In this document: positions 12,015-53,296 of the stretch, in pieces
How positions within the stretch are numbered: position 1 is the first letter of the stretch
How the letters are laid out: every line of letters starts with the position of its first letter
NCBI GenBank assembly: GCA_047495785.1
Contig: JBLDXI010000036.1
Location: 248,001-312,000 of the forward strand
Source: Lepidodermella squamata
Lineage: Eukaryota > Animalia > Gastrotricha
Reading direction: 5' to 3'
Length of the DNA: 64,000 nucleotides
Translations under genes and position numbers: made by a program
The notes under the pieces: model-generated
The model's database searches: none
The model's input: only the letters and a program-made list of their open reading frames with translations
Told to the model about the DNA's origin: nothing

Positions 12015-13635
12015 ATTCATTAGTTATAGACTTCAAGAGCGAACGTCGTGCCGATACGGTTGAAACGCTGAAAATGACAAGCGACACCTTGATCAACTTC
12101 TCAAACCAAATATCCTTGCCGTAGCCATGCTCAAGAGTGGCACGATTTCCCCCAAACCATACTCGCCACATGTGCAGTTCCCGCAAATGTGTCTAACAGT
12201 AGGCCGCAAGCTGTAATGGCGCTGCTGACGCCATTTCGAAATCACGAGTTCATCCATGCGTGTCAAAGCATAGAAATCGAGAAATTTCCGCGCGTAGAAC
12301 AACCAGCGCTTACTCTCATCTTCCGTTTTATCAAGTTCCGAATGAGCAACCTTTAGTTCAGGGCATCGATCGCCAGTTGACACAATATCGATTGCGATCG
12401 ATCGATTTTCGATTTTTTGTAAAATCGATTTTTCTATCAGTTCACGTGTTTCCTCCAACAACTTGTCTGTTGTTTAGAAAATGATGAATTTTGGATTTGT
12501 TAGCAGCTAAGATTTTGCTGGCAACCATATCGCCATTGCAAGAAACTTCTTCAGGATCCATGAAAAATTATTTCCCATCTCCTAATCGAATCTGAATTTC
12601 GATTTTTTACGATTCGATCCACCTGGCTGAATCCATCATAACACAACGGTCAAACAGTACAGCCAATTCGTCACGCGGTCGAGGTAGCAAAAATCTCAAA
12701 GCTGCTGTGACGAGGATGGATCCATCGATTTTCGAAACTGAAGTTTGATCGAGAATAGGTTGTGAAATTGTCCGGAAAAATGTGTCAAAGGCAGGGTTTT
12801 TAATCATGGAAAAAATTGAAGCCATTCAATTTGTATTGAAAATTGCATGGTCAATTTCCTCAATGTATTCCATGAACATATAATTGCTTATCAAATTATA
12901 ATTTTGAGCCTCTCCAGCGCTGTTTAGAAGTCTGAAAACGTGCGTCGAATTTTCGTCGAATGCCTTCAATTTTCCGCGGTTTTCCATTATAAATTTTCCA
13001 GTATAAATCGACTGGAAAATATGCAGACAGTTGATTTGGTTTTAACCAATTGATAATTTGAGGTCGACGGAGGGCTAACGAGAGGTGAAAGGTACCAATG
13101 ACGCCGCGCAGGCGATCGCCGAATCCGCCACAAACTTCGCCATCAATGCATCGATATTCAATGATCTGTGGAAACTCCAAAAAAATATTGTTATAAAATT
13201 ACTCACCAGTAAAATTCGAAAAGGTTATGGCATGTCTTATCAATTTCACACAAGCAACAATGGTACAGGACTCGAATTCCTTAAATATTTGGTTACCTTG
13301 GACTGTGAAGATTGAGGAGTTTCATCCAAAGATTGCCGAATTTCCGCTATTTCCTGCTTTATGATTTCTGCCATAATATCCGCTTGCTTGCTCCTCAATT
13401 CCAGGTCTGTCAGGTAGTCTGAAATCGAAGATGAATCATCAAAGCCACCAGACGCATTGCTGAACAATTTTTCGGCCGAGAAATCATCGGTTTTAGAATA
13501 TTCAACGAACTTTGAAAAAGTGAAGTGAAGCTTTGAAAAATTGTAGACTGAAACAATTGCGATAACTGCTGTGATTGCAAGTGAGTAGTGAAAAATGCGT
13601 GAAGAATTTGAACTAGGTTTGATATATTCCTCCAT
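12015..13635 (-). pseudogene. Fucosyltransferase-like pseudogene (paralog of 51661-53296)
   Basis: Colinear homology (CGGFGDRLRG, SKIDGSILVTAALR, FLDFYALTRMDELVIS, HGYGKDI) and the same intron position, but split over several frames with stops (e.g. WIES* vs WDNSYK; IRLGDGK*). Confidence 0.85.
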
Positions 13636-25975: not shown

Positions 25976-28900
25976 CTAGTAAGACGTCTCGCACATGACG
26001 GCGCTTGCAAAATTGTCACAGGCAGTACTAGTCAGAGAGTGTTTGCCGTTTTCGTAATCGTATATCTCCAGGAAGACACAGCCTTCGCTCGTCGGACCAT
26101 GCCAGTCTGCTGCCTTGTAAGAGTAAACTGAACCGTCGTCCCACAGATACGTCCCATTTGCTGATCGAGTCAGGCCAACCCAAGCCTCATACAGTCCCTG
26201 GGCCTTAGCTGCCTGCTTGGCCAGCTCCATTTCTGCGTCCGTTTTCATCATTGCAAGACGGGCGCCTTGGTTGATGCACACTTGAACAGCTCCAGCATAC
26301 TCCCAGCTGTTAGCAAATAAAAACAAATTTCTTACAGTTACGGGCATAATTTTCTTTTCTGACCTATAACCCCAAATTGCTGGTCTAAATGCAAATTCAA
26401 TATTGTGAAAAGAGATTATTTCAGTGTTATACAGCTACAGCCATATTTTACTCCCGCCACAGCAATCCGAAGTAAGCAATACCCCCCGTTGATTAACTTA
26501 TGTGAATAAGAAAAGCTTACTTGACGCTTTCTCCGTCGTCGGTTTCCGAGTGGAAGAAATAATGCTTTACTGGGGCTTGGCAACTCAGCAAACTCGGGTA
26601 CTCATAATCTGCCGGGTAGCGAGTTTCACTGGCTGAACAGTTTCCGGCGCTGCTTAAACGGCAGTTGACAGTTTTATCAGCCGTTTCGCATCGGTAGTAA
26701 CTGAAGAATAACAAGAAAAATCATGACGCCAAGAAATTAAGCGCGCTCGAAATGCCTTGTAAACTAACTTTGACGTTCTGCAAGTTTTGAAATTGGCATA
26801 TTTGGTTACACCGCCATCCAACGCAACCTGTAGTGATAGATTGAAGCGTAATAACTTCGAGGTGATCACTTGAGAAAACGTTGCTTACAGTTGTATTCGG
26901 GCACGACAGAGATTGTGGAACGCAAACGGCATATAATTTAGTCGAGCTGTCAACACACTTGATGTAACTGTCCTGAAAAATCATAATCAATTCGATTCAA
27001 CTTCAATTTGAAGTTAATACCCCCAGCGTGTTTCGGCATATCGCGTAGCCTATGTAAACGGGAAAGTTCGCCACGATCCCGACCTGAAATTGCAATAGAC
27101 CGAGAAATCCTGTTGTATTGCTTTTCAAGTGTAACCTTCATGTTACCTCATACTTCGGGCAAACATCGAGACAAATGCCGCCGGTTGTTGCATCAAAGCA
27201 ATAGCGTACGGGCTGAAATTATAAAATATAATGATAACTGGTCTGCACAGCTGCTGCAAATGTTACGTCTAGCTCGCATCTCTGTTTAGTAAGATACACC
27301 ACTGGGCTTGCTGTAAAATTCTTGAGAAAAGCTTAATGATAGAAAAGTATCACGAGTTTCAATGCGCCAGTCTCACTGTATTGCATGTAGTCGGAGCTTC
27401 CTCGCACTCCAGATTATATTTATAAGTGTCCTGAGGGAAGCAGCGTCGATACGGATACATTTCAGGCGGGGCTGTTTGTTTGTTGGAAAAGACGTCAAAC
27501 TGACCAATTGACTGAAGTTAGAACTCACCAGTCGTGCAATCGTTTAGCGTATCGAAAGTTGCTCCTTCGATCGTTGCATTTGGGCACGTTGCGTTGTTCG
27601 AAGCAGGAATGCATTTCACGAGATCGAACGTGGTTTGATCCACGCAGAGTTTGTGAGGTTTCTAAGAATATCCGAAAATCAGAATAAGTAAACACAGGCT
27701 CGACTCACCAGAGCCGTGAGGCAGTCAGCGTAGTTGCTCGCAAAGTCCAGTTTCGAGTTGAATGTTGAAGCCTCAGTGGATGGTACATAGTTGTAGATAT
27801 TTTTCCCAAAAATCGAGAGTGCATTATTCAAATACATACCACTGTCATAGGTGAAGGGCAGCTATTGCGGCAAACCGAACCGTTCGACGATGAGCAAAGT
27901 GCAGCTGGCTGTGAATTATGAACAACAACTAACGTAATTTCAAAAATCAACGAATTCAACTTAAACTAACGCCGTTAATGCAGTGAGCTTTGTCCATATA
28001 AGTGTCAGGGCTGTATGTCTTCAAAAATATTGTGCAATTTCAAATTGATTTATTCGCGATTTTCCGTGGCTTACCTGAGTCGAGCTCGAATCGCAGGGCT
28101 TCGATTGGCAGCCGAGAAATGATAGATCACTTTGGAGGAAGCATCGGTTGTGCGGCAAGAAATCAGCGTCATTCCGTTTGACTGATGAGGGAATTTAGTT
28201 GAATTTGATCACTTCGAATTACATCCAGCTGTGATGGGTTTCGATCAACTTACTATTAGCCTGGGCCATGCAAGCAGAGGTTTTCGACCATGGGCCAACC
28301 GCAGTCTATAATGTAGAAATAAGGAATTAGACTCATTTGTTAAGAATTGTTAAGAATTTCCCATTCGATTCTGGTCTTTGAGCCTTGCTAACTTGTACTC
28401 ACCCCGTTGTTTGGGCATGGCCCATTGACAGGAATGCAAGTTTGCTGACCGTTGCTGTTGCAAAGCGTTGCTTTAGTATTCTGTCAACAATTATGAAAGG
28501 AAACCAGTGCGAGATCGAAAATTCGAGAGAAAATAAACGTACCAAAAAATTGCTTATAGTTGCTCTACAATTTTTGTATTGCGCCTCGAAATTGAAACCA
28601 AGAAATTCAGCGATCTAAATCATAAATAGAAAGTTGAATCTAAATGTACTGAAAATGTATTAGCGTACCATAACTTCATCAGTCTTTGAGCAACCAAGGT
28701 TTCGAGGGATACATCGCATGTTGATGGTTTTGAAGTTGAAACAGCTGCGGGCGGCCTTAAATGGGGCAATAATTTGAAATCGAAATTTGATCAAACTGAG
28801 AAAAGTCTCACTCCATCTAAACAACTAGCAGACGTTGGCAAAGCGAGGCCGAGCTGGAACAAATAAAGCTTTTGAACAAATGAATGAATAATTTAATAAT

Positions 28901-30151: not shown

Positions 30152-30596
30152 CTGAAAGACTCTTAAAATGGCGATTTTTCGTAAAAGTGACCAACTTTGA
30201 AATTTCTTTAAAAAAGTTAGAGAAAAAACCGTCTCATTAGACGGGGCTCATAGATAGAGGAGCGCTTCTACCGTAACGACGTGTATCTTTGGACAAAACG
30301 TGTTTTCGAACATTAAAAATCAGCCTTTGCTCCTACATTTCTGAAATTTTTACCAAACGTGGGGACGGTGATTCTTGAATTTACTGCTAATTTGTAAAAT
30401 TTTCAGAATTTTACCTGACCTTTGGCAAATTAATATGTGTTCCGGTAACTTTGGACAATTAGAGGGTAGCTTTGGACACTCATTTGCATATGCAATTTCA
30501 TTACAATTTCATTGTGAATTATCTGTTTTTCATGGTTTTTCATTTAATCATAAAATAATTATGAACAGATGGCGCATCATCTGTTTCTCGGAAGTT

Positions 30597-30998
30597 TGTC
30601 ACACTGAAACTTTTAGGAAACTAGTGAGTTCGACTGTGACGTTAAAGGTGTGATGTATCTTCTGTGATACCAGAAGATGAGTAGCCAACAAAAGGTAGCA
30701 AAGACGCTAATTCCAAGAGTTACCACTAAAGGTTTTATTAAACTCATAAACCAAAAGAGCTAATAACTTGTTGTTTCTCACACAATTTCCTCCTGCTTAT
30801 ATACAATACACTTGCGTCATTACCTGCGCATCTTCCTTGCCTCTGACGCACTTTGGTAACACCTTTGACGCACTTTGGTAACAGCTTGACGCACGTAACG
30901 GAAGTTCTGACGCACTTACCGGTACGTTTGTAGGATGCTGATTCACCGCTATGAATCATCGGTGTTAACTTGTTCTCAACCTTTTCAACCTTTTCACA
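30597..30998 (-). repeat. 3' LTR
   Basis: Direct repeat of 38075-38476, no differences seen by eye; preceded on the minus strand by the PPT. Confidence 0.97.
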
Positions 30999-31118
30999 CC
31001 TCCCCTCTAGTTTATACGTGAAACGTAAAATTTACCAGAAGTTAGGTATAAACGGTTTATTTAGAAAAGGTTATGTTATTCACAATATTTACAGCGTTAA
31101 ATGAAGTTTATCAGAGTA

Positions 31119-31823
31119 TTAGTACAGTTGAGGCACTACCGGTGTCGGCATGTACCCAAGACAATCGAGTTCGAGTAGAAGCTGGCGATCGTCGAGGTAG
31201 ATCGCTCGATCTAGTAGTCTGACGCATGGCACTTGTCGAAGACCGCCGTTGTGATGCACGTTGCAGTGCCAATCGTTGGCCATAAGCCTCAGATTGCACT
31301 GTCTAATAGTTGGCCAAAGATTGAGGTCATAGAAGGCCGGTAACTTGACGCGGATGTCCAGGCTACCTAAGTTGACCTCGAATCTCTCCGGCGTGTGCCC
31401 GACCAGGTTGGAGAAGCGTGCGATTGGATAGATTAAATCCACGGTTGCTGGAGTCGGTCGAATGACCCAGGTACGGTGGGTAAGCGTTTGAACAGCTCCC
31501 TCGTCGGCTGCTCCGCTAGGCAGAGTCGCCATCATTCGGAACGCCGACGGAACGCTCTCCATATGCTGACTTCTCCTCAAGGCCATCGGCTCCAATTGGT
31601 CAGACTGCAGCACAACTACTTGCGTTTGCTGAAAGGATGTCTCCAGTCCGCCGACAATGGTGATGGTGCCATCTTGGTGGTGGACGGGAGCAGCAACATT
31701 GGCGGCTTCTAGGCCATATTCGCCGTAGGAACCACCAGATTGTTCCGAACTGCTGCTTGTGGCGTCGGACGACGCCGGACTCTCTCGCATGGGTACTACG
31801 ATTGCCGTCGGCCGGATGCTCAT
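31119..31823 (-). CDS. Retroelement ORF4, unknown function (about 234 aa from first ATG)
   Basis: Uninterrupted sense-strand ORF between env-like ORF3 and the PPT; Ser-rich N-terminus, globular-looking C-terminal half; no motif recognised. Confidence 0.7.
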   Translation of the reverse strand: MSIRPTAIVVPMRESPASSDATSSSSEQSGGSYGEYGLEAANVAAPVHHQDGTITIVGGLETSFQQTQVVVLQSDQLEPMALRRSQHMESVPSAFRMMATLPSGAADEGAVQTLTHRTWVIRPTPATVDLIYPIARFSNLVGHTPERFEVNLGSLDIRVKLPAFYDLNLWPTIRQCNLRLMANDWHCNVHHNGGLRQVPCVRLLDRAIYLDDRQLLLELDCLGYMPTPVVPQLY

Positions 31824-31903
31824 ATGCTTAAACACAAAATTATAAATGATGTAGTTTGCTTAAATAACCTGGCGATCGTCCCAGAGACGTCGCATTTAGC
31901 TGC

Positions 31904-33172
31904 TTATATAGAGCTGCATATGGTATTTGGCTGTTTTCGTCGAAACACCTTTTTGGCGCGCGTCATAGGTTCGTAAATGTTGTCATGGCTTCGGTGTTGC
32001 CTTTCACACCCCATCTGAATATTCGTTAGGCACTTTAGGAGCACAAATATGATAATTGAGCTAAGGATGACCACAACAATGATACTCGCTCCCCACCAAG
32101 TTATCCCGGAATTGGTCATTTCAGGTGTAATTTCAAAAATTTGACACGATTTGACCATGGTGTGTCTAGGCAGCTCAATTTTTGAAGAATTAGGCTGCAT
32201 TAACATGTTTTTCCCGATGATAACAAAGGTCGAGGCGCTAAAACTGCCGTTGGTGATATTGACGTCACCTTCGACTTGTAGCATTTCGTGATTACCGCAT
32301 CCTATTGTGCCTGTCGCCAGAGTAATCAGTGTGGCTGATAGCAATTTGAGTGCAAAGCTTGTATGACTTACGTACGAAACCATTGTCGCTTTTGCTAGCC
32401 AGAAAGTGGTGTTGTTGATCTGTATCCATGGTGGTAGATTATCGCAGAAGTTGGCTGTTGCTTTGCATATGTTGAGTTGACTTGTTTCGTTCGTCGGATG
32501 CATCCAGTTGACCATAGTTCGACTCGTATATGCTTCCCAGGGGCATATCATTGTTTCATGTTTTCGATGGCACTTGTTGAGATTGGCATTGAGTATCTGA
32601 AACTGTCCGTCTTCACAATCTATAGCTGTGTAAAGATTTGTAAAGAGTAAAAATGGAGAGATGACACAATAATCATCTTCCTTAAAGTAGAGAGGAAAAA
32701 TATCCAAAATTTTACACGATTTTATCAGAGGGCTGTGACTTGGCGTAACAGTCTCCGATCGAATATGGCCATAATCTAAAGGAAACTTATTTGAGTTAAG
32801 CCAATCACTTACCCGCTGTGCCGTGTTATTGGATCGCTCTCGTTTTCGGCGCTTGAGAACCAAGGACCATTCTGGTTCCGAAGGCCATGATAGCGATTCA
32901 TGCTGCCTTCTGCGCCTGGCGTGTGCCGGTGTAGGACGTGCCATAGTCGTTGTCCTTGCGCTTGTCGTTGTTGTCCTTGTCGTAGTCACTGCGGTCGTTC
33001 TCCTTCTTCGAGTTGTCCATGGACTTGTCGCAGTTGTTTCGGAATTGTCTCGCGAGAATGTTATCGTTCGGCCTGGTCGAGTTATCACCAGTGTAGATAG
33101 CCATAAGTTGATTTCGTCGGTTGCCCCAGTAACTTCCACCATCGTTGCCATCAATACCAAAATCATCGTCAT
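31904..33172 (-). CDS. Retroelement ORF3, envelope-like type I membrane glycoprotein (422 aa)
   Basis: N-terminal hydrophobic signal, Thr-rich mucin-like tract, polybasic furin-like sites (RRRR, KRRKRER), Cys-containing ectodomain with many N-x-S/T sequons, TM helix WWGASIIVVVILSSIIIFVLL and a short tail; occupies the env position after pol. Confidence 0.8.
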   Translation of the reverse strand: MTMILVLMATMVEVTGATDEINLWLSTLVITRPGRTITFSRDNSETTATSPWTTRRRRTTAVTTTRTTTTSARTTTMARPTPAHARRRRQHESLSWPSEPEWSLVLKRRKRERSNNTAQRVSDWLNSNKFPLDYGHIRSETVTPSHSPLIKSCKILDIFPLYFKEDDYCVISPFLLFTNLYTAIDCEDGQFQILNANLNKCHRKHETMICPWEAYTSRTMVNWMHPTNETSQLNICKATANFCDNLPPWIQINNTTFWLAKATMVSYVSHTSFALKLLSATLITLATGTIGCGNHEMLQVEGDVNITNGSFSASTFVIIGKNMLMQPNSSKIELPRHTMVKSCQIFEITPEMTNSGITWWGASIIVVVILSSIIIFVLLKCLTNIQMGCERQHRSHDNIYEPMTRAKKVFRRKQPNTICSSI

Positions 33173-33204
33173 TTTTCCATACCTAGAAAACTCGAATAAT
33201 TAAT

Positions 33205-36200
33205 TTATGGCAATAGTTTACCTTTCATGGTCCTATCTAATCGTTCCCTAGTCGGAATTGACGGTTGTCTGGGATTTCGATAAGACCTAAATGGTGCCAT
33301 AGGATCCTTTTGTTCGAGTTGTTCAGGTTCTTCGAATTGTCGATCCAAATCGTCTTGCTCCAAATTTGCTGGTTCTGGGTCCAGTTCTGGTTCGTGAACG
33401 ACAACCAGTGGTGGCTGAGGTGGTACTGGTAGTACTGCAGGAGTTGGAACTAACGGTAGAGGCCTTGCCGGTATCACCGGTGACAAAGGGTCAATTGGCC
33501 TAGGAGCTCCAACTTCCTCAGCTGGCGATGTGTCGAATCGTTCTTGGTCCCAGAGAGATGCCAGCGTGTTGCTTCGCAAATTATAGGAATGGATCGGCGA
33601 ACTCGGTTGAGTCCTTTTCGTAGCAGATTTGGCCATTTTCGCAGATTCTGCTGTCTTTCCAGTTGCATTGTTTGGATCGTGCTGCGTCGCGTCGCTTTCA
33701 TCGTCGGTTTCGGCCGTTTGGTTTGCCATAGCCAGTTTGTCGACATTGCCATAGAAGGGTTTGAGCCGATTCCGATGAACTATTTTCGGTTTCTGCTTGC
33801 CATTAAGCAGTTGAATCTCGTAGTTGACTCCGATTCGTTGAAGAACGGTGTAAGGACCACGATATGGCGACCAGAATTTGCGTGGAGTTTTGGAAGCAGT
33901 TGGCATTTGTGGACAGTGAAGCCAGACTAGCATTCCTTCCTCAAATGGCTCTGCATTGCCTGCGTTTTTGTCGTAGATGGCCTTTTGTCGAGCTCTTGCG
34001 AGCTTCATTCGGTCATTCACGAGTTTGAACGCAGCTCGGAGATTACGATGTATCTTACATGCGTAATCATCGGTGCTTACAGGTTTGCCATTTTCGGGTT
34101 CCAGCAGATCACCAGGGATCCTAACTCTCCGTCCTGTAGCTAGGAACATAGGTTGCATATGATGGCTCGATTGGGTTGACGTGTTGAAAGCGAAGATTGC
34201 CGGAGCCAGCATATCGACCCATTTTCCGCTCGTTTTGTTGTTGAAAGAGTTGGCGATCATCGCCGCGATGACGGCCATGAATCTCTCGCATCCCCCATTG
34301 GCCATAGCGTGATAGGGAGAGATCCTAAGTTGCTTGATTTGCAGTAGTCGTTCCACTTCGCTTGCCAGCTTGCCAGATAGTTGCTTGCCGTTGTCAGAGA
34401 GAATTGCTCGAGGAAAGCCATGCAGGTAGCAAAATTCCAGCATTTTGTCTACAACTTTCTCAGCTGTGATAGTTCGTAAGGGCCAAGCCGCGAAGAATTT
34501 GCTGAAATGGTCCCCCATCACTAAGACAAATCGGTGCCCGTCGCAACTTTCGACTGGCCCCAAGATGTCCCACATGTAGATGTCTCCAAAGTAGTTGCTG
34601 ACAATTGGATGTAATTCGGCTACCGGATTCTTAATGGGACCTTTGCGCTGTTGGCAGGGAATACACTCCCTGACGTAGTCGGCGACAGTTGTTTCCATAT
34701 CCGGCCAAAAGAATCGCTCTTTGACGCGAGCTAATGTCCGGTCGAAACCCAAATGTCCGCCAACCTCGTCATGTAGGTGCTGAAGAGCCGTTTTGCGCAA
34801 GGTGATCGGTAGAGCGAATTGCTTCAATTCTCTGCTTGGATGGTTAGGATATCGGATTAGAAGTCCATTTTCCAAAGCGAATCTCCTGTCGAGTTGTTGA
34901 TTCGAAGCCAGTTTGCCGACAACGTCCTTGATCCATGGGTCGGCTTGTTGTTCGATCTTGAGTTGTTCCAGACTGATTCTTGGTTGGAGATTGATATTGA
35001 TCGCAGGACCCAGTCCTCGTTTTACTGGCGGTGCAGAGCGATCAGGTTTCCGGCTTAGAGCATCAGCATTGAGATGTTGTTTCCCAGGCTTATATTCAAT
35101 CTTGATGTTGTAATTGCTGAGAAGAAGAGCCCATCTGCTGATTCGCCCTCCGACATCCCTAAACTTGTTCATGTGTACAAGAGGATTGTGATCGACAACT
35201 ATAGTAACCTGACCTAAATCGGGTGAGTCGTTGATCATGGCATGTTGTTCTCGCGTCCTTATATAGGACTTGAAGAAAGATCGAAGCGAAGTTACTATGC
35301 CTAAAGCTTCGCGCTCTGTCGTGCTCATATTTCGCTCGGCCTTAGTTAGCGTTCTACTAGCGTATGCGACAGGGTGTTCCTCGCCGTTAGTAACTTGGCT
35401 TAGAACTGCCCCGATGCTGTGATCTGAGCTATCGCAGTGTATTCTAAAGGGTTTGCTAAAATCAGGGTAACTTAGGACAGGATATGTGGTGAGTTTAAGC
35501 TTCAAGAGATTGAAAGCCTTCTCAGCTTGATCCGTCCATACATAGTTTTGGGCTGATTTTCGCATGAGCGCAACTAGGGGTTCTGTTATTTCTGCGTAAG
35601 CATTAATGTACTTGCGATAATAGTTACAGATCCCCATAAAAGAGCGAAGTTCATGTATATCTTTAGGCCTATCATAATCTAGGATAGCAGCTACTTTCGT
35701 GCGCGAGGGAGAAACGCCTTGACTATTTACTCTAAAGCCTAAGAACTCAATCTCAGACTTGGCTAAGTGGCATTTAGAGCCGTTGAATTTTAGCTTAGCT
35801 ACGCGAAAGCGAGAAAATATTTCCCGTAAAAGTTCGAGATGTTCCTCGAAAGTTGTCGAGAAACAGGCTATATCATCCGCGTAAGTGACCACTTTATTAG
35901 TAGCGATTAAATCGCCTAAAGTGTCGTGCATAACTCTGCCCCATACTGCGGAAGAGTTAGTGCCCCCCATTATCACTCGTTGCCATTTCCAACAGCCTAA
36001 TGCTCCCCCGAGATCAAAGGACGTGAGATCTTGGGAGTTCGGGGTCAAACTTATGGACCAAAAGGCTTGTCCAACATCCATATTACTTATGAAACGGAAT
36101 GGCTTGCCTTGGTTACCTAGGCTATCTACACAGTCATCTAGACGATTTCCTGCATAGAGTTCTTTTTTCGAGTGATTATTTAATATGCGCGCGTCTAAAA

Positions 36201-37083
36201 CTAGCCTAATGTGCTTTTTATCAGCCTTAGGGATAATTTGGATGCCATTACGATGTTGCGATTTCGAAGGAGCAATGATTCCTGCTTTGTACAGTTCCTC
36301 AAGCTCCTTCTTTAGAAGAAGTTTTTCTACGTGCGAAAATCTACGCATAGGTTGCTTTATAGTTACCCCATCTGTTACGATAGAGTGTGCAAACTTGTCG
36401 TAGTTGCCTACATCGTATCTGTGGCGCATGAAAATGTCGCTAAATTCGTTAACTAGAGCTTTTAGTTTAAAACGCTGTTCTTCCGTAAGGCTAGGTTCGC
36501 TTAAGTCGACTTCGGGTTCCCATGGTTCTAGTTTAATGGAAGAGGGCCTCTTTGGAGCCGATTGCTCCTTCAGAGGAATATCTACGTAAGGATGTAGTGC
36601 GGCATGTTGACCTATGTTCAGGAGAACTGAGTCAGCTTTGCCATTTAAAAGTGAAATTTTGGAGCCATCCTTAAGAACTAGTTGCTTATTTTCCCAGTTA
36701 ATAGTTGAGGCATAATTATCTAAGAAGTCTGCCCCTATCAAGGCTGGCACGCACAGCCGATCTATAGCTAGAAATTCGTGCTGAAATGTGAGTTTTCCCA
36801 GTTTTCCTTGAAGACCTATAGATCCCCTGACCTTCAGGTTTGCACCGTCTGGTCCTATGGCTGAAGCCACCTTAAAAGCACTATTCTTGGGAACTAGAGA
36901 TGAACTAATGCAACTTTTAGCTGCCCCTGTATCTATCAAAGCTCTAATGGGTTTGTCCTTAATAACTATTTTAGCCATGAGTCCCTTGATCCCATTAATG
37001 CTAGGTATAAGGTTTGGGAATCTCGGGGAGATAGAGTACAGGCTTGCCTTATCCCCATTTAGGCTTGCCCGTCCTCGTTTCCC
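33205..37083 (-). CDS. pol: Pol polyprotein (protease, RT, RNase H, integrase), entered by -1 frameshift
   Basis: LIDTGA protease, YADD RT, CDSSD..GAVL RNase H, H-x5-H..CIPC zinc finger, D..SDNG..ER integrase core, GPY motif. The reading frame stays open from the GGGAAAC site to the annotated ATG at 36978. Confidence 0.96.
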   Translation of the reverse strand, partial: GKRGRASLNGDKASLYSISPRFPNLIPSINGIKGLMAKIVIKDKPIRALIDTGAAKSCISSSLVPKNSAFKVASAIGPDGANLKVRGSIGLQGKLGKLTFQHEFLAIDRLCVPALIGADFLDNYASTINWENKQLVLKDGSKISLLNGKADSVLLNIGQHAALHPYVDIPLKEQSAPKRPSSIKLEPWEPEVDLSEPSLTEEQRFKLKALVNEFSDIFMRHRYDVGNYDKFAHSIVTDGVTIKQPMRRFSHVEKLLLKKELEELYKAGIIAPSKSQHRNGIQIIPKADKKHIRLVLDARILNNHSKKELYAGNRLDDCVDSLGNQGKPFRFISNMDVGQAFWSISLTPNSQDLTSFDLGGALGCWKWQRVIMGGTNSSAVWGRVMHDTLGDLIATNKVVTYADDIACFSTTFEEHLELLREIFSRFRVAKLKFNGSKCHLAKSEIEFLGFRVNSQGVSPSRTKVAAILDYDRPKDIHELRSFMGICNYYRKYINAYAEITEPLVALMRKSAQNYVWTDQAEKAFNLLKLKLTTYPVLSYPDFSKPFRIHCDSSDHSIGAVLSQVTNGEEHPVAYASRTLTKAERNMSTTEREALGIVTSLRSFFKSYIRTREQHAMINDSPDLGQVTIVVDHNPLVHMNKFRDVGGRISRWALLLSNYNIKIEYKPGKQHLNADALSRKPDRSAPPVKRGLGPAININLQPRISLEQLKIEQQADPWIKDVVGKLASNQQLDRRFALENGLLIRYPNHPSRELKQFALPITLRKTALQHLHDEVGGHLGFDRTLARVKERFFWPDMETTVADYVRECIPCQQRKGPIKNPVAELHPIVSNYFGDIYMWDILGPVESCDGHRFVLVMGDHFSKFFAAWPLRTITAEKVVDKMLEFCYLHGFPRAILSDNGKQLSGKLASEVERLLQIKQLRISPYHAMANGGCERFMAVIAAMIANSFNNKTSGKWVDMLAPAIFAFNTSTQSSHHMQPMFLATGRRVRIPGDLLEPENGKPVSTDDYACKIHRNLRAAFKLVNDRMKLARARQKAIYDKNAGNAEPFEEGMLVWLHCPQMPTASKTPRKFWSPYRGPYTVLQRIGVNYEIQLLNGKQKPKIVHRNRLKPFYGNVDKLAMANQTAETDDESDATQHDPNNATGKTAESAKMAKSATKRTQPSSPIHSYNLRSNTLASLWDQERFDTSPAEEVGAPRPIDPLSPVIPARPLPLVPTPAVLPVPPQPPLVVVHEPELDPEPANLEQDDLDRQFEEPEQLEQKDPMAPFRSYRNPRQPSIPTRERLDRTMKGKLLP

Positions 37084-38012
37084 TGATTGGCAGGTGAACT
37101 AGGTGGTCTAAAAGATCTACGGTTCCCCCAGTTCCTATTTCCTAATCCCCTCCCCCCTGAAAACCTAGGTGGGCGTCGACATTCGCTTTTCCTATGGCCT
37201 GGAAGGTTACAGTTCCAACAGGTGATCGGTCGGCGAGCCGCATGAGGTTCTTCGAACCGCATTTGGCCCACTTTATCAGTCAACTGTTTTATCGCCTCGT
37301 TTTGTGCCTTCGTTGTCTCAGATTGAGAAACTAGGGCGTTTATAAGGCGACTGGCGTGATCGGTCAGATCCGATTCGCCTGGATTCTGTAGAGCGTTAAT
37401 AATAGTATTTCCTAGATTGCTTAGCCTATCGGCGCGTTCTGCCTTTTCTGCGCGCGTGGTGATTGCCTCAATATCAGCAGGGTCACCCTCCTTATAGACT
37501 GCTACCCTTAACTCTGGTCTAAGGCCTAATGCATACCTGTTCAGCAACTTGCCGTCGAAGATCGATTTGAGCGCTACCGTGCCATCCTCGTAGCCAGCTT
37601 GATAAAGAAGCCGTTTGAGAGCTGTTAAATACTCCCGAACAGATTCTCCAGATTGCTGCGATCGTGCCATGAAAGCCATCTCGCTGAGCGCCTTGTCGGG
37701 TTGAAGATTGGCACCTTGCTCAAGGATAGTCCTCACTTGAGACAGTTTGGTGCTGGTGGGCGCATTCGGTGATTCTTGCCATACTTCCAGAAGGCGACCG
37801 GTAAGGTACAGCGGTAACACGGCTATAACCTTGCGTCTTGCCTGTAAGGCTAATGACTCGGTACCGTCCAGATTGCTGTCAGGGTCCTCGTCTTTGGCTC
37901 CGCATGCACGGGCCAGAGCTGAGAACTGCTGCCAGCTTTCGTGGAATTTCTCGTAATTGGTACCAGAAATTTTCGGGAACGCGTTAAGCGATCGTTGAAT
38001 TTCGAAAGCCAT
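37059..38012 (-). CDS. gag: Gag with CCHC zinc knuckle
   Basis: Q..GESVREY major-homology-like segment; CWNCNLPGHRKSEC knuckle; lies upstream of pol. Confidence 0.93.
   Translation of the reverse strand: MAFEIQRSLNAFPKISGTNYEKFHESWQQFSALARACGAKDEDPDSNLDGTESLALQARRKVIAVLPLYLTGRLLEVWQESPNAPTSTKLSQVRTILEQGANLQPDKALSEMAFMARSQQSGESVREYLTALKRLLYQAGYEDGTVALKSIFDGKLLNRYALGLRPELRVAVYKEGDPADIEAITTRAEKAERADRLSNLGNTIINALQNPGESDLTDHASRLINALVSQSETTKAQNEAIKQLTDKVGQMRFEEPHAARRPITCWNCNLPGHRKSECRRPPRFSGGRGLGNRNWGNRRSFRPPSSPANQGNEDGQA
37077..37083 (-). promoter_or_regulatory. -1 ribosomal frameshift slippery site G GGA AAC
   Basis: XXXYYYZ heptamer in the gag frame just before the gag stop; the -1 frame continues into pol; a possible downstream stem (ggggata...tatctcccc). 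Confidence 0.8.
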
Positions 38013-38074
38013 TCGAGAGAATTAATTTTAGAAGAGTTTTAAGAAAACTAAGCTCACAGTGGCCAACAATTTTA

Positions 38075-38476
38075 TGTCACACTGAAACTTTTAGGAAACT
38101 AGTGAGTTCGACTGTGACGTTAAAGGTGTGATGTATCTTCTGTGATACCAGAAGATGAGTAGCCAACAAAAGGTAGCAAAGACGCTAATTCCAAGAGTTA
38201 CCACTAAAGGTTTTATTAAACTCATAAACCAAAAGAGCTAATAACTTGTTGTTTCTCACACAATTTCCTCCTGCTTATATACAATACACTTGCGTCATTA
38301 CCTGCGCATCTTCCTTGCCTCTGACGCACTTTGGTAACACCTTTGACGCACTTTGGTAACAGCTTGACGCACGTAACGGAAGTTCTGACGCACTTACCGG
38401 TACGTTTGTAGGATGCTGATTCACCGCTATGAATCATCGGTGTTAACTTGTTCTCAACCTTTTCAACCTTTTCACA
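38075..38476 (-). repeat. 5' LTR with TGACGCA repeats, TATATAA and AATAAA
   Basis: Direct repeat of 30597-30998; on the minus strand four TGCGTCA motifs precede TATATAAGCAG (approx. 38271-38281) and AATAAA (approx. 38212-38217). Confidence 0.97.
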
Positions 38477-39920
38477 AGTTCAATAAAAATACGTTTCCGC
38501 GCAGCAGCATACTTAAACCATCCAAAAGTGTCCAAAATTACCCCAATTTTCACCTGTTTTTCAGGTGAATGCCCTGCTAAAACGCGTCGACGGATTGTAA
38601 TTTTTTCTTCGATTATAGGAAGAGTAAAGATAGGAGAATACTTATGCCAACTTTTATTGAAAACTGTTCGATTTTTAGAAAGATAGAAGGGGGGTCCCAA
38701 AACGGCTCCCAAAGTCTAACTACTTTTTCTGAAATTCGATTTCAGCTCCAATCGTCTTGATTTTTATGTCAAACGAAAGCTGAAGAGACGGAGAATTTTA
38801 TGCAAACACCCCCATGATTTAAACGTTCAACCCTGAAAAGCTAAACACCTGCAAAGTTGAAAGTGTCCAAAGTTACCGTGTCCACAATCACCACACGTTA
38901 CGGTAGTTTCCTGTAAATTTGTGGGAAATGAAACATTTTCTCTGGGAATTTTAGAAAATAATTAAAAATCGGAAAAATTACAATGGGCGGATAGGGCGAT
39001 GAGTGAATAAAAATGAAGGTCGCGTGCCCACTTTTTCATGTGTTGGTGTGAATTTATTTACTATAGGAAGATCGCTAGTTTCCGATCTTTATAGAGTTGT
39101 CTATGCCGAGGGTAATATTTTTGTCACATTGCGTAATGTAAAAAGGCATGATTTAAGGCGGAAATTTGCTAAGAATACCTAAGAAAAGTAGGCTGAAAGA
39201 CCCAATATTATTGCTCCTTGAAAACTGTTTCAGCCATGTCAAGCCTAATTGCCCTAGGCAGCCATTACCGAATATTCACATCTAGCGCTAATATTCATGA
39301 AAATAAACGGTTTTAAATGGGCCCAGGGGTGATATCCTCAGTTTTCTACCTCTATCTCCGACCACTTAATTGTGTTAGAAAAGTGAAAAGTGGTAGATTA
39401 GAAGTGTCAGCGACACTGCACTAATCGCTACCTAGCCGTCCGCCTGAAAACACCTAAACAAGCGACCCTAACAGTGTTCATTCGGCCCTTCCATTAAACG
39501 AATGGAGTCCACGAATGTCTCAAGATGAATCCATTTTTTTTCTTTAAAATATGAGAGCTATCAGCTTATTCATTCAGAACCAAATTCCAGGTTCCCATGA
39601 CGCGGAGTTTTATTCATAATCGCATCAAATCTAAGTAATAGACTATAGACAGTATCAGTCATTTTTTGATGAACAGAACCGAAACGAAAAACATATGGGT
39701 ATTGACCTTGGGGTTTTCCCCACTGAAGCAAATCGATAAAGAAGAAAGTCACAACTGATTTAATTAATTATTACAAGCTCGCGCTGTTAAGCTGTTAGCT
39801 TGTAATATAATGAAGACGTTTCGCATGAAAAATCATCACGTGGAATATTCGTCAGAGATTTGTCGTTTTTAACGTAGGTAATCATATTTAGGCAGAAAGA
39901 GACAGCGGTCGTTCGTCGAA

Positions 39921-42535
39921 TCATGCCAATCGACAAGTTTGAAAATCGTCATATTTAGTTACACCGCCATCCAACGCAACCTGTAGTCAACAATTGAAGC
40001 ACAAATACTTCGAGGTGATAGTTTCAGAAAAAGTTGCTTACGGTAGTATTCGGACATGGCAGCACTTGTGGGACGCAAACGGCATATGATTTAGTCGTGG
40101 TGTCGACGCACTTGATGTGGCGGTCCTATTAAATGATAGCCGTCAAGAGTACTCGAAACGTCAATATAATTTTTTTACCCCCATAATATTACGGCAAATC
40201 GAGAAAGTTATCCCAATGTTATTGTAATCTGCGATCCCAACCTAAAATCGCTGTGCGCAAGAAATAATTGCTCAATAATATCAAAGTTCATACTTACGTC
40301 ATACTTGCCGATTCCTGTTTCGCAAACATCTTGACAGATACCACCGGTTGTAGCATCATAGCAAAAGCGCATGGGCTGAAATGGCTTAGTTAAAAGAAAC
40401 GTGTTCGAAAATTATGAACCATTATTACCCCACGATCGCAGCTCTCCTTGGTGAGATACAAAATTGGGCTGGGCGTATAAAGCTTGTCGAAAGCAATGAA
40501 TGAGTAATCATTAATCATCGTGATTTTATATACAAAATTCTCACATTAGTCGCATTGCACGTTGTCGGAGCTTTTTCGCAAGTGGCAAACTCAAGAGGAG
40601 TCTGCCGGAAGCAGCGGCGATACGGATACATTTCGGACGAGGCTGAATTGAGGAAAAGATAATAACTCATAACATACGGTAGTTGAAACTCACCAGAATT
40701 GCACTCGTTGAAGGTGTTGAACGTGGCTCCTTCGATTGTTCCATTAGGACACGAGGCGTTGTTCGAAACGGGCAAACATTTCACGAGGGCGAACGTGGTT
40801 TCATCGACGCACAGTTTGTGAGGTTTCTAACAAGTTGAAAGAAGTAAGATTGCTGAGCTAGTTTCGAGCTAATCGACCAACCAATGCAGCTGCGAGACAA
40901 TCAGCGTAGTTATTAGCAAATTCCGGTTTCGAGTTGAATGTTGACGCCTGAGGAAGTAGTACACCACAACATTATAGATTCTAAATTGCATTAGGGTATT
41001 ATTGAGGAACATACGACTGTCATTGAGGAGGGGCAGCTACCGCCGCAAACCGAGCCATTAGTCGAAGAGCAAAGCGCGGCCGGCTGTTGAATTTCAAAGA
41101 AAAATTAATTTGAATTTCTTTAATAAAAGATCCAACTCCGATAATGCAGTGAGCTTTGTCCATGTAGGTCAGAGGGCTGTAGGACTGGATAGAAAATATT
41201 TCAGCTTCATGAAATAATTCGATTAATGACTGGGTATTCTATACCTGAGTCATGTTGGTCGAATTACAGGGCTTGGATTGGCAGCCGACAAAGGACCGGT
41301 CGCTTTGAAGGAAGCATCGATTATGCGGCAGGAAATCAGCGTCATTGCGTTTGACTGATAGGGAAAACGAGATGAATTTATTAATTTCCCATTTTCGCGT
41401 CAAACCAGCTGTGGCAGGTTTTTACTCAAGCTCAACTCACTGTTAGCCGCGGCCATGCAGGCAGAAGTTGTCGACCATGAGCCAACCGCAGTCTGTAAAA
41501 CAAAGGATTTAGTTCCTGAGTTGACTCATCTGAAAATCTCATGAAATGAATACCCAGTTCAGCTCAATTAAATAGTGATTTTGATCATTGAATACAATTG
41601 AAATGAAAATTCGGATTTTTCTTGAAATCTAGAAAATTTTTAAATTCATTGAATTCTTCAAATTCTCGGCTGAAATTATCTGAAATTTTTGCTGAATTGT
41701 TTTTGAAGCTCTGAATTCTAAAAAAAATTGAAATTAAAAAATTAATACATTTTAATTTTAAAATATGTATAGTAAAATTTAAATTATAACACCATCGCTA
41801 TGAGCCAAAAATCGAAGAATTTTAAATTTTGCCGAAAAAGTCTGTTATCAAAGAGCCTGAAAAATTGATTCGAGGCCATGAATTTCGATCAGTCGTACTT
41901 ACCCCGTTGTTTGGGCATGGCCCATTGACAGGAATGCAAGTTTTCTGGCCGTTGCTGCTACAAAGCGTTGCTTTAGTATTCTGTCAAAAATCATGCATAT
42001 GAATCGAAGTAGCGGCAGAAAATAAACCCACCAAAAAAGTATTAATAGTTGCTCTACAATTCATGAATTGCGCCTCGAAATTGAAACCAAGAAATTCAGC
42101 GGTCTAAATGATAAACGTAAAATTAAAATTCATATTCATAGTTCATCTGCGTACCAGAATTTCATCGGTCTTGGAACAGCCAAGGTTTCGAGGGATGCAT
42201 CGCATGTTGATGGTTTTGAAGTTGAAACAGCTGCGGGCGGCCTTAAATGGGGCAATAATTTGAAATTGAATTTGATTAATATTAAGAAAGGCTCACTCCA
42301 TCCAAACAACTAGCAGACGTTGGCAAAGCGAGTCCGAGCTGGAACAATTCGAGTTTAAAAAATGTCGTGAATAAATCGATTAATTAATCCTCACTTGGAC
42401 TTCGTCGAGAAAAGAACAGGAAGTTTTACAGCCCATAAAAGTATCATTGAGCCTTGAGAAGCAGCGCTTGTAGTCGGCTGAATAGGCCACTCCAGCCAGG
42501 CCAAGTATCAAAATCAAGCGCAGAGTTGTAGACAT
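39921..42535 (-). CDS. Subfamily A gene 7: stalk-only (CTLD deleted) protein or young pseudogene
   Basis: MSTTLRLILILGLAGVAYSADYKRCFSRLND start, full stalk; the last stalk exon VALDGGVTKYDDFQTCR runs into LA* and is followed by CTLD debris (attggcatg = IGM; tgcgaaacg = CET). Confidence 0.7.
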
Positions 42536-51660: not shown

Positions 51661-53296
51661 ATGGGTGAATATTTCAAATTCAGGTTAAATTCTAAACAAT
51701 CGCATATTTACTACTACCTGCTTACTGCTGTAGTGCTCGCCATTGTTTCTGTCTACACGTGGCATACTTCGAATAAAATCAATGTTGCCACATATTCGGA
51801 GAGCTTTTGGAGTTCGCAAGACTGGAGCAATATCTCAGCCGAAATGCTATTCAGCAAGGCTTCCGAGGGTTTTGATGATTCATCGACTGTTTCGGACTAT
51901 CTGCATGACCTTGAATTGCGGAACAAACAGGCTGACATTCTGGTCGAGGTGATTCAACACGACTTTATAGCGAAAATTCGACAATCCATGGACGGAAGCA
52001 CGCAATCAGTACCCTCAAAGGCAAGAACTATTGGGAAGAATGAACAGTTATAAAAAATTGAGCTAAATTTGAACATTTCGAAGAGTTTGAGCTAGAAATC
52101 GGAGCCAGATAGGGATTTCCTGGAAATATTTTGATTTTATTTTAAATATATTTCCCTTACAGATTTTTGAGTATCGATGCATCACTGGGCTGAATTGTGG
52201 CGGATTCGCCGATCGGCTACGAGGCGTCTTATCATCCTTATACTTTTCATTAGCCCTCAATCGACCTCTAATCATCAACTGGTCGAAGCAAAACCGGCTC
52301 TCCGAATATTTTCCAGTCGATTTATACGAGAAATTTGAAAAAATCGACGAAAATTCTACTACGGAATTTTTCAGATATTTCGACACTAAAGGCGAGGTGC
52401 AAATTTACACCGATATGAGGGATGCTACATTTAAGGAAAATATCGAAAACATGACTCATGCGACTTTTAATACTAATTCAATGGTTCCAATTTTGATGAT
52501 GTTGGAAAATCCTGAATTTCACAGTTTTCTTCGGAGAATTATCTTACCTATTCTCGATCGAACTTCAGCTTCCAAAGTCGACGGATCCATCTTAATCACA
52601 GCAGCATTGAGGATTTTGTTACCTCACCCGCGTGATGAATTGACGGAACTAATTGGACGATGTGTTATGGTGGATTCGGAAAAATGGGATAATTCTTACA
52701 AAATCGGCGTTCAAATTCGATTGGGTGATGATGATGAATTCTTCATGGATCCTGAAGAAGTTTCTTGTTACGGCGATATGGTTGCCAGCCAAATTTTAGC
52801 AGCGATGGAGTCGAAATTTATAATTTTCCTAACATCAGACAAATTATTGACGGAAAATCGCGAACTAATAGAGAAATCGATTTTTCAAAAAATCGATAAT
52901 CGATCAATCGGAATCGATATTGTGTCAACGAGCGATCGATGCCCTGAACTCGAAGCCCACCATTCTCAATATGATACGCCGAAAAATGAGAGTCAAAACT
53001 GGCTGTTCTACGCGCGGACATTTCTCGATTTCTACGTTCTGACACGCATGGATGAACTCGTGATTTCGCGCAGTGGTTACAGCGAAATGGCGTCGTTTTA
53101 CAGCCTGCGACCTACTTTACGATACATTTGTAGAAAATGTAAATTCGCCATAAGAGGCTTGGGTGAAATCTTGCCTCTTCAGCATGGCTACGGCAAGGAT
53201 ATTCGGTTGGAGAATGTTGAGCAGGGTGCCACTTGTCACTTCCAGCATTTTAACCGAATCGGCACAACTTTCGCATTTGAAGTCTACGACGATTAA
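51661..53296 (+). CDS. Type II membrane fucosyltransferase-like glycosyltransferase (exons 51661-52020, 52163-53296)
   Basis: Signal-anchor YYYLLTAVVLAIVSVYTW, stem, then CGGFADRLRG, IGVQIRLGD (motif I), IFLTSD (motif II), DFYVLTRMDELVISRSGYS (motif III) of the alpha-2/alpha-6/O-fucosyltransferase GT-B clan; the spliced frame is open. Confidence 0.8.

Follow-up and report, generated by a model that had tools for sequence, protein, structure and literature searches.

ORF4, the reading frame behind the env-like gene of a Ty3/gypsy element in the 64-kb stretch of DNA analyzed here (the window), is a genuine, non-chance reading frame of that element, and the element is young, recently inserted, and intact. 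Our preferred explanation, which we hold tentatively and at slightly less than even confidence, is that ORF4 is a lineage-specific accessory gene of an intact env-carrying Ty3/gypsy element and that it would be expressed from its own subgenomic mRNA, with a splice as the favored route. The first-pass annotation of this DNA had proposed a retroviral-style accessory gene. Of that proposal, the genuine frame, its location at the accessory position of complex retroviruses, and its need for a separate mRNA held up, and a matrix-like role for the product did not.

The element and its surroundings

The element is of Ty3/gypsy type, occupies 7,880 bp of the minus strand (window positions 30597-38476), and is single-copy within the 64-kb window. 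Its two LTRs, 402 bp each, have TG..CA ends, are mutually 100% identical, and are both flanked by the same 4-bp target-site duplication. The gag, pol, env-like, and ORF4 frames have zero stops and, besides the natural gag/pol overlap (40 nt, with pol in the -1 frame), zero frameshifts. Assignment to the Ty3/gypsy (Metaviridae-type) elements is based on the LTR ends with their short target duplication and on the order of the Pfam domains in pol, which is protease, RT, RNase H, and integrase. A candidate primer-binding site, initiated by TGG, lies 10 nt past the 5' LTR. The window is without a tRNA gene for comparison, and Rfam and tRNA scans of it gave no match. ORF4 itself is a separate frame on the sense strand. 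The env-like gene precedes it, and a spacer of 120 nt separates it from the 10-nt polypurine tract, which adjoins the 3' LTR. All features are listed in the table.

Table. Features of the element in window coordinates, in the element's 5' to 3' order.
Feature	Position	Strand	Remark
Target-site duplication, upstream copy (4 bp)	38477..38480	-	same 4 bases at both LTRs
5' LTR, 402 bp	38075..38476	-	100% identical to 3' LTR
TATA 11-mer, LTR copies	30793-30803 and 38271-38281	-	one per LTR
Poly(A) signal hexamer of 5' LTR	38217	-	within 38075..38476
Leader, LTR to gag ATG	38013..38074	-	candidate primer-binding site and donor-like GTGAG
Donor-like GTGAG of the leader	38057 (first base)	-	between LTR and gag ATG
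gag, 317 aa, open	37059..38012	-	weak Pfam matches: zinc knuckle, Retrotrans_gag
pol frame, open	33205..37098	-	first ATG 36978, 1257 aa; Pfam domains
Acceptor-like AG before env-like ORF3	33183 (end)	-	10 nt before the env-like ATG; preceded by a T-rich tract
env-like ORF3, 422 aa, open	31904..33172	-	glycoprotein-type features
Internal TATA 11-mer	31900-31910	-	exact match; overlaps the env-like stop at 31904-31906
env-ORF4 spacer	31824..31899	-	T-rich acceptor-like AG inside
Acceptor-like AG before ORF4	31827-31828	-	ends a T-rich tract
ORF4, 234 aa plus stop, open	31119..31823	-	GC-rich island; ATG at 31823, stop 31119-31121
Long hairpin	30957..31118	-	ORF4-LTR spacer pairs with polypurine tract and first ~25 nt of U3
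Internal poly(A) signal hexamer	31056..31061	-	57 nt past the ORF4 stop
Polypurine tract, 10 nt	30999-31008	-	purine run adjoining the 3' LTR
3' LTR, 402 bp	30597..30998	-	identical to 5' LTR
Target-site duplication, downstream copy (4 bp)	30593..30596	-	same 4 bases as upstream copy

The LTRs have further features of their own. Just upstream of the LTR TATA, the U3 of both copies (38283-38400 and 30805-30922) carries a 7-base motif five times, in both orientations, as well as a 22-bp tandem repeat of 2.5 copies; the heptamers and the repeat look like an enhancer array. The LTR-derived leader (R-U5) contains a 44-codon upstream ORF (38092-38225, minus strand), which begins at 38225, precedes the gag AUG, and would sit on every LTR-driven transcript.

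Most of the window is taken up by a tandem cluster of C-type lectin genes, which flanks the element. Their introns are ordinary GT..AG ones, and the host is therefore an animal. A diverged direct duplication of about 80% identity, its copies about 13.2 kb apart (27511-28495 and 40676-41995), has one copy on each side. As this flanking duplication belongs to the lectin cluster, the element was inserted between paralogous units. The window also holds a second duplicated host gene family, represented by the paralogous ORFs at 12093-12461 and 52397-53296; these have no Pfam match at E 0.01 and adjoin short first exons that resemble membrane anchors (13246-13635 and 51661-52053).

Relatives of the element are distant in the collections that we searched. 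Among 5.8 billion protein clusters, the closest pol is only 35% identical, and the pol matches that carry a name come from molluscs, fishes, and a turtle, all annotated as generic Ty3/gypsy polyproteins. The gag, pol, env-like, and ORF4 proteins of the element found no self-match in the searched protein collections. Given the missing self-matches and a best pol of such low identity, the lineage, and probably the host genome as well, is unsampled in these collections.

The label env, which the first-pass annotation had given to ORF3, has its support in features of the protein. ORF3 has the features of a type-I glycoprotein, namely a signal peptide, a Thr-rich stretch, three basic motifs of cleavage type, seven N-glycosylation sequons, and a C-terminal membrane anchor at about residues 355-385. 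Its sequence, however, matched nothing in Pfam, NCBIfam, PDB sequences, or the word search, with the F-type and gB-type envelope families included. ORF3 may be a third envelope type, or no envelope at all, and we refer to it as env-like throughout.

The ORF4 frame and its product

The 234-aa frame reported behind env by the first-pass annotation was recovered unchanged. It is open for 246 codons from stop to stop. When the 905-nt stretch from env to the LTR was shuffled with dinucleotides preserved, at least 238 open codons were obtained in 1 of 2000 shuffles, with a shuffle mean of 102. The ORF4 DNA has 0 stops in its own frame vs 5-11 in each of the other five. Its GC content is 55-57%, vs 42-50% elsewhere in the element, and this island is confined to the ORF. 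By codon position, GC1/GC2/GC3 is 0.62/0.45/0.60, a coding-like pattern in which GC1 exceeds GC2 and GC3 is raised; the correlation of its codon usage was low with every other gene set and is uninformative. A functionless stretch of 0.9 kb would be unusual here because the element is otherwise complete and young. On selection, the openness of this copy says little, since identical LTRs mean that there was no time for decay; the analysis of ORF4 covers this one copy.

The predicted protein is acidic, with a net charge of -6, and contains 16 Arg and one Lys. That single Lys compares with a mean of 6.2 in base shuffles, of which 14 in 2000 had one Lys or none. The N-terminal half is of low complexity, with residues 1 to ~45 rich in Ser, Ala, Gly, and Glu, and the final ~115 residues are hydrophobic-patterned and include four Cys and several His. 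Neither a signal peptide nor a hydrophobic segment was found in ORF4 (the maximum 19-residue hydropathy is 0.97). The matrix-like product suggested earlier does not fit a protein that starts with Met-Ser, has no Gly after Met, carries this charge and a single Lys, and is devoid of hydrophobic segments.

Homology searches identified ORF4 as an orphan, with no detectable relatives in the databases searched. The whole protein and both of its halves had no Pfam match at E values up to 10, and there was no match in NCBIfam, in PDB sequences, or in a word-index protein search. ORF4 is likewise unlike the element's own gag, pol, and env and the rest of the window, and no ORF4-like sequence occurs in 120 pol relatives of up to 2,100 aa. 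An exhaustive HMMER search of 1.84 billion representative proteins drew one borderline match (P0001, E 1e-3), a bacterial protein of three identical Ig-like repeats. We rejected it as spurious because its score sums one 50-residue match of 38% identity over the repeats. The first-pass annotation had also named structure prediction and Foldseek for the C-terminal part as a check, and this gave no fold match. AlphaFold2 in single-sequence mode yielded unusable models (pLDDT 35.9 for the full length and 35.3 for the C-terminal 130 aa), and the best Foldseek hit against PDB had an E value of 0.34, with TM scores of at most 0.27, which are meaningless. The lack of ORF4 relatives is weak evidence, given an unsampled lineage whose closest pol is so distant; fast-evolving genes of the element's relatives therefore could not have shown up.

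Routes to an ORF4 message

Under standard eukaryotic translation, ribosomes are unlikely to reach ORF4 by scanning from the env message. ORF4 needs an mRNA of its own because it lies behind a 422-codon ORF full of AUGs. We looked for splice, TATA, and poly(A) patterns in their textbook consensus forms, and the signals described below for ORF4 are consensus-level matches only.

The T-rich tract that the first-pass annotation had seen before the ORF4 start is present and ends in an AG 3 nt short of the ATG. The env-like gene has an acceptor-like AG in a corresponding place. Ranked by upstream pyrimidine content among 509 AGs, the ORF4 AG is 26th and the env-like AG 64th. The ORF4 AG has A at -3, which is a rare type, and the host acceptors in the window are pyrimidine-rich CAG. 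This matched placement of AGs before the env-like and ORF4 starts is suggestive of splicing, and we lean, tentatively, toward splice-type over internal-promoter expression for ORF4. In the mechanism that we propose, ORF4 would be translated from a dedicated subgenomic mRNA. This would be a second spliced message, joining the donor-like site of the leader to the AG before the ORF4 ATG, in parallel to the use of the env-like AG; the alternative would be a TATA-driven internal transcript. ORF3-type genes of LTR retrotransposons typically use spliced messages (PMC5408684).

That alternative, in which ORF4 is real but would be driven by an internal promoter at the TATA 11-mer of the env-like gene end, follows the analogy of the foamy viruses, where an internal promoter inside env drives accessory genes (PMC3185757). 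We consider it doubtful, although several observations are in its favor. The minus strand of the 64-kb window does have three exact copies of the 11-mer common to the LTR TATA and the end of env, and the plus strand has none; the internal copy begins 87 nt before the ORF4 start codon. Only one other TATA-type motif occurs on the sense strand of the 7-kb internal region. Downstream of 31895, there is no AUG before the ORF4 start. The single intervening AUG lies so near the TATA that it would not be transcribed, which would make the ORF4 AUG the first one in a TATA-driven transcript. Of the two poly(A) signal hexamers that the internal region has on its sense strand, one lies past the ORF4 stop; with a TATA before it and a hexamer after it, ORF4 is bracketed like a self-contained unit.

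The evidence against an internal promoter begins with the 11-mer itself. The LTR and the internal region have 2 common 11-mers vs 0.78 expected, at least one is found in 46% of shuffles, and the common 11-mer is by itself no more than chance would give. Around the internal TATA, likeness to the LTR ends at the 11-mer, and other common 7-9-mers are at chance level. The five U3 heptamers and the 22-bp repeat, which precede the LTR TATA, are entirely missing upstream of the internal one. The other internal TATA-type motif (35259-35265, minus strand) lies inside pol; it has no obvious downstream ORF, so motifs of this type do occur without one. Finally, use of the internal poly(A) signal by such a unit would shorten the genomic RNA.

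Origin, role, and known systems

As an accessory gene, ORF4 would be a late addition to the element, acquired by capture from another source or newly arisen on a GC-rich insert. Its product would be soluble, acidic, and near lysine-free, with a Ser-rich N-terminal half that is probably disordered and a C-terminal half that would be beta-rich and carry the Cys and His. We propose that it would act in trans, as a host-interaction or regulatory factor and not as a structural protein of the virion.

A late arrival could also have been of no service to the element. On this account, which we judge unlikely, ORF4 is a passenger, newly acquired host or foreign coding DNA that is open by youth. Its composition is indeed foreign to the element: GC3 is 0.60, vs 0.50 in gag, 0.44 in pol, and 0.45 in the env-like gene (0.53 in the host lectin exons), and K/(K+R) is 0.06 vs 0.35-0.53 in gag, pol, and env. 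The identical LTRs left no time for ORF4 to decay, and a poly(A) hexamer comes after it, as in a captured cDNA. That hexamer, however, has no A-run behind it. No donor gene was found among the 1.84 billion proteins or elsewhere in the window, and ORF4 begins and ends cleanly inside the spacer, on the element's strand.

It is very improbable that the region is chiefly an RNA element, with a part in export, packaging, or reverse transcription and an open frame that is secondary. The 702-nt ORF4 RNA does fold with a z score of -3.95 (20 shuffles), but the gag RNA used as a control comes close to it (z -3.19), with the env control at z -1.63. In a scan with 160-nt sliding windows, the ORF4 body had a mean z of -1.6 vs -0.9 for the element (sd 1.3), which is unexceptional, and structure gives no account of a stop-free frame of this length. 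Structure is strong next to ORF4, where the spacer forms a long hairpin with the polypurine tract. No other window of the element folds as strongly (z -4.35, equaled by 0 of 200 shuffles), and an internal loop of the hairpin contains the internal poly(A) hexamer. As modeled, the hairpin might hide that hexamer or contribute to plus-strand priming. Least credible of all is that the frame is open by chance within GC-rich spacer DNA. One could cite for this the absence of homologs, the low structure confidence, and the low-complexity N-terminal half, but the shuffle result and the one open frame out of six make it extremely unlikely.

If ORF4 is conserved and expressed, it would mean that invertebrate retroelements too build "complex" genomes with accessory functions, and it would provide a new orphan protein for studies of host-element conflict. 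Should it turn out to be a passenger, it would document the capture of a gene by an element that is still intact. One copy supports neither claim. A more far-reaching reading, an invertebrate "complex" endogenous retrovirus of Ty3/gypsy type with an independently evolved foamy-type promoter at the env stop, an accessory gene behind env for a lysine-free host-interaction factor of new fold, and an envelope-like protein that is neither F-type nor gB-type, seems to us quite improbable.

Env-carrying Ty3/gypsy elements ("errantiviruses") are widespread in animals and are described with three ORFs and with envelopes of F-type or gB-type (Chary & Hayashi, eLife 2026, PMC13524379). The present element is like them in its LTR-gag-pol-env-LTR layout, its pol domain order, its 4-bp target duplication, and its being a young intact metazoan copy. 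It is unlike them in having a fourth ORF behind env. In the strict sense, the element also departs from the errantiviruses on one tested feature, since its env-like protein has no sequence match to either envelope type. Our search of the open literature turned up no description of an invertebrate Ty3/gypsy element with a fourth ORF behind env.

Family-specific extra ORFs between pol and the 3' LTR have been described in the Juno, Vesta, and TelKA elements of bdelloid rotifers, as ORF3 types (PMC5408684), and in plants, as aORFs (PMC7264820). Some are without known homologs, and they are thought to have been captured and to be read from spliced messages (PMC5408684, PMC7264820). ORF4 is likewise an additional frame between pol and the 3' LTR. 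The rotifer and plant ORFs, however, occupy the ORF3 position, instead of or as env, whereas ORF4 is additional to the env-like ORF3; it also has no Pfam match to their enzymatic types (GDSL esterase/lipase and DEDDy-type exonuclease).

The accessory genes of complex vertebrate retroviruses are listed in PMC2238898. ORF4 is like them in lying between env and the 3' LTR and in needing a separate mRNA, and the TATA-type motif at the 3' end of env is a likeness to the foamy viruses in particular. There is no sequence relationship to those viruses, the element is a Ty3/gypsy element and not one of the Retroviridae, and the analogy is functional only. In kind, the present element is an env-carrying Ty3/gypsy element, a type widespread in animals, with an additional ORF of the sort known from rotifer and plant LTR retrotransposons, and its layout resembles that of the complex vertebrate retroviruses.
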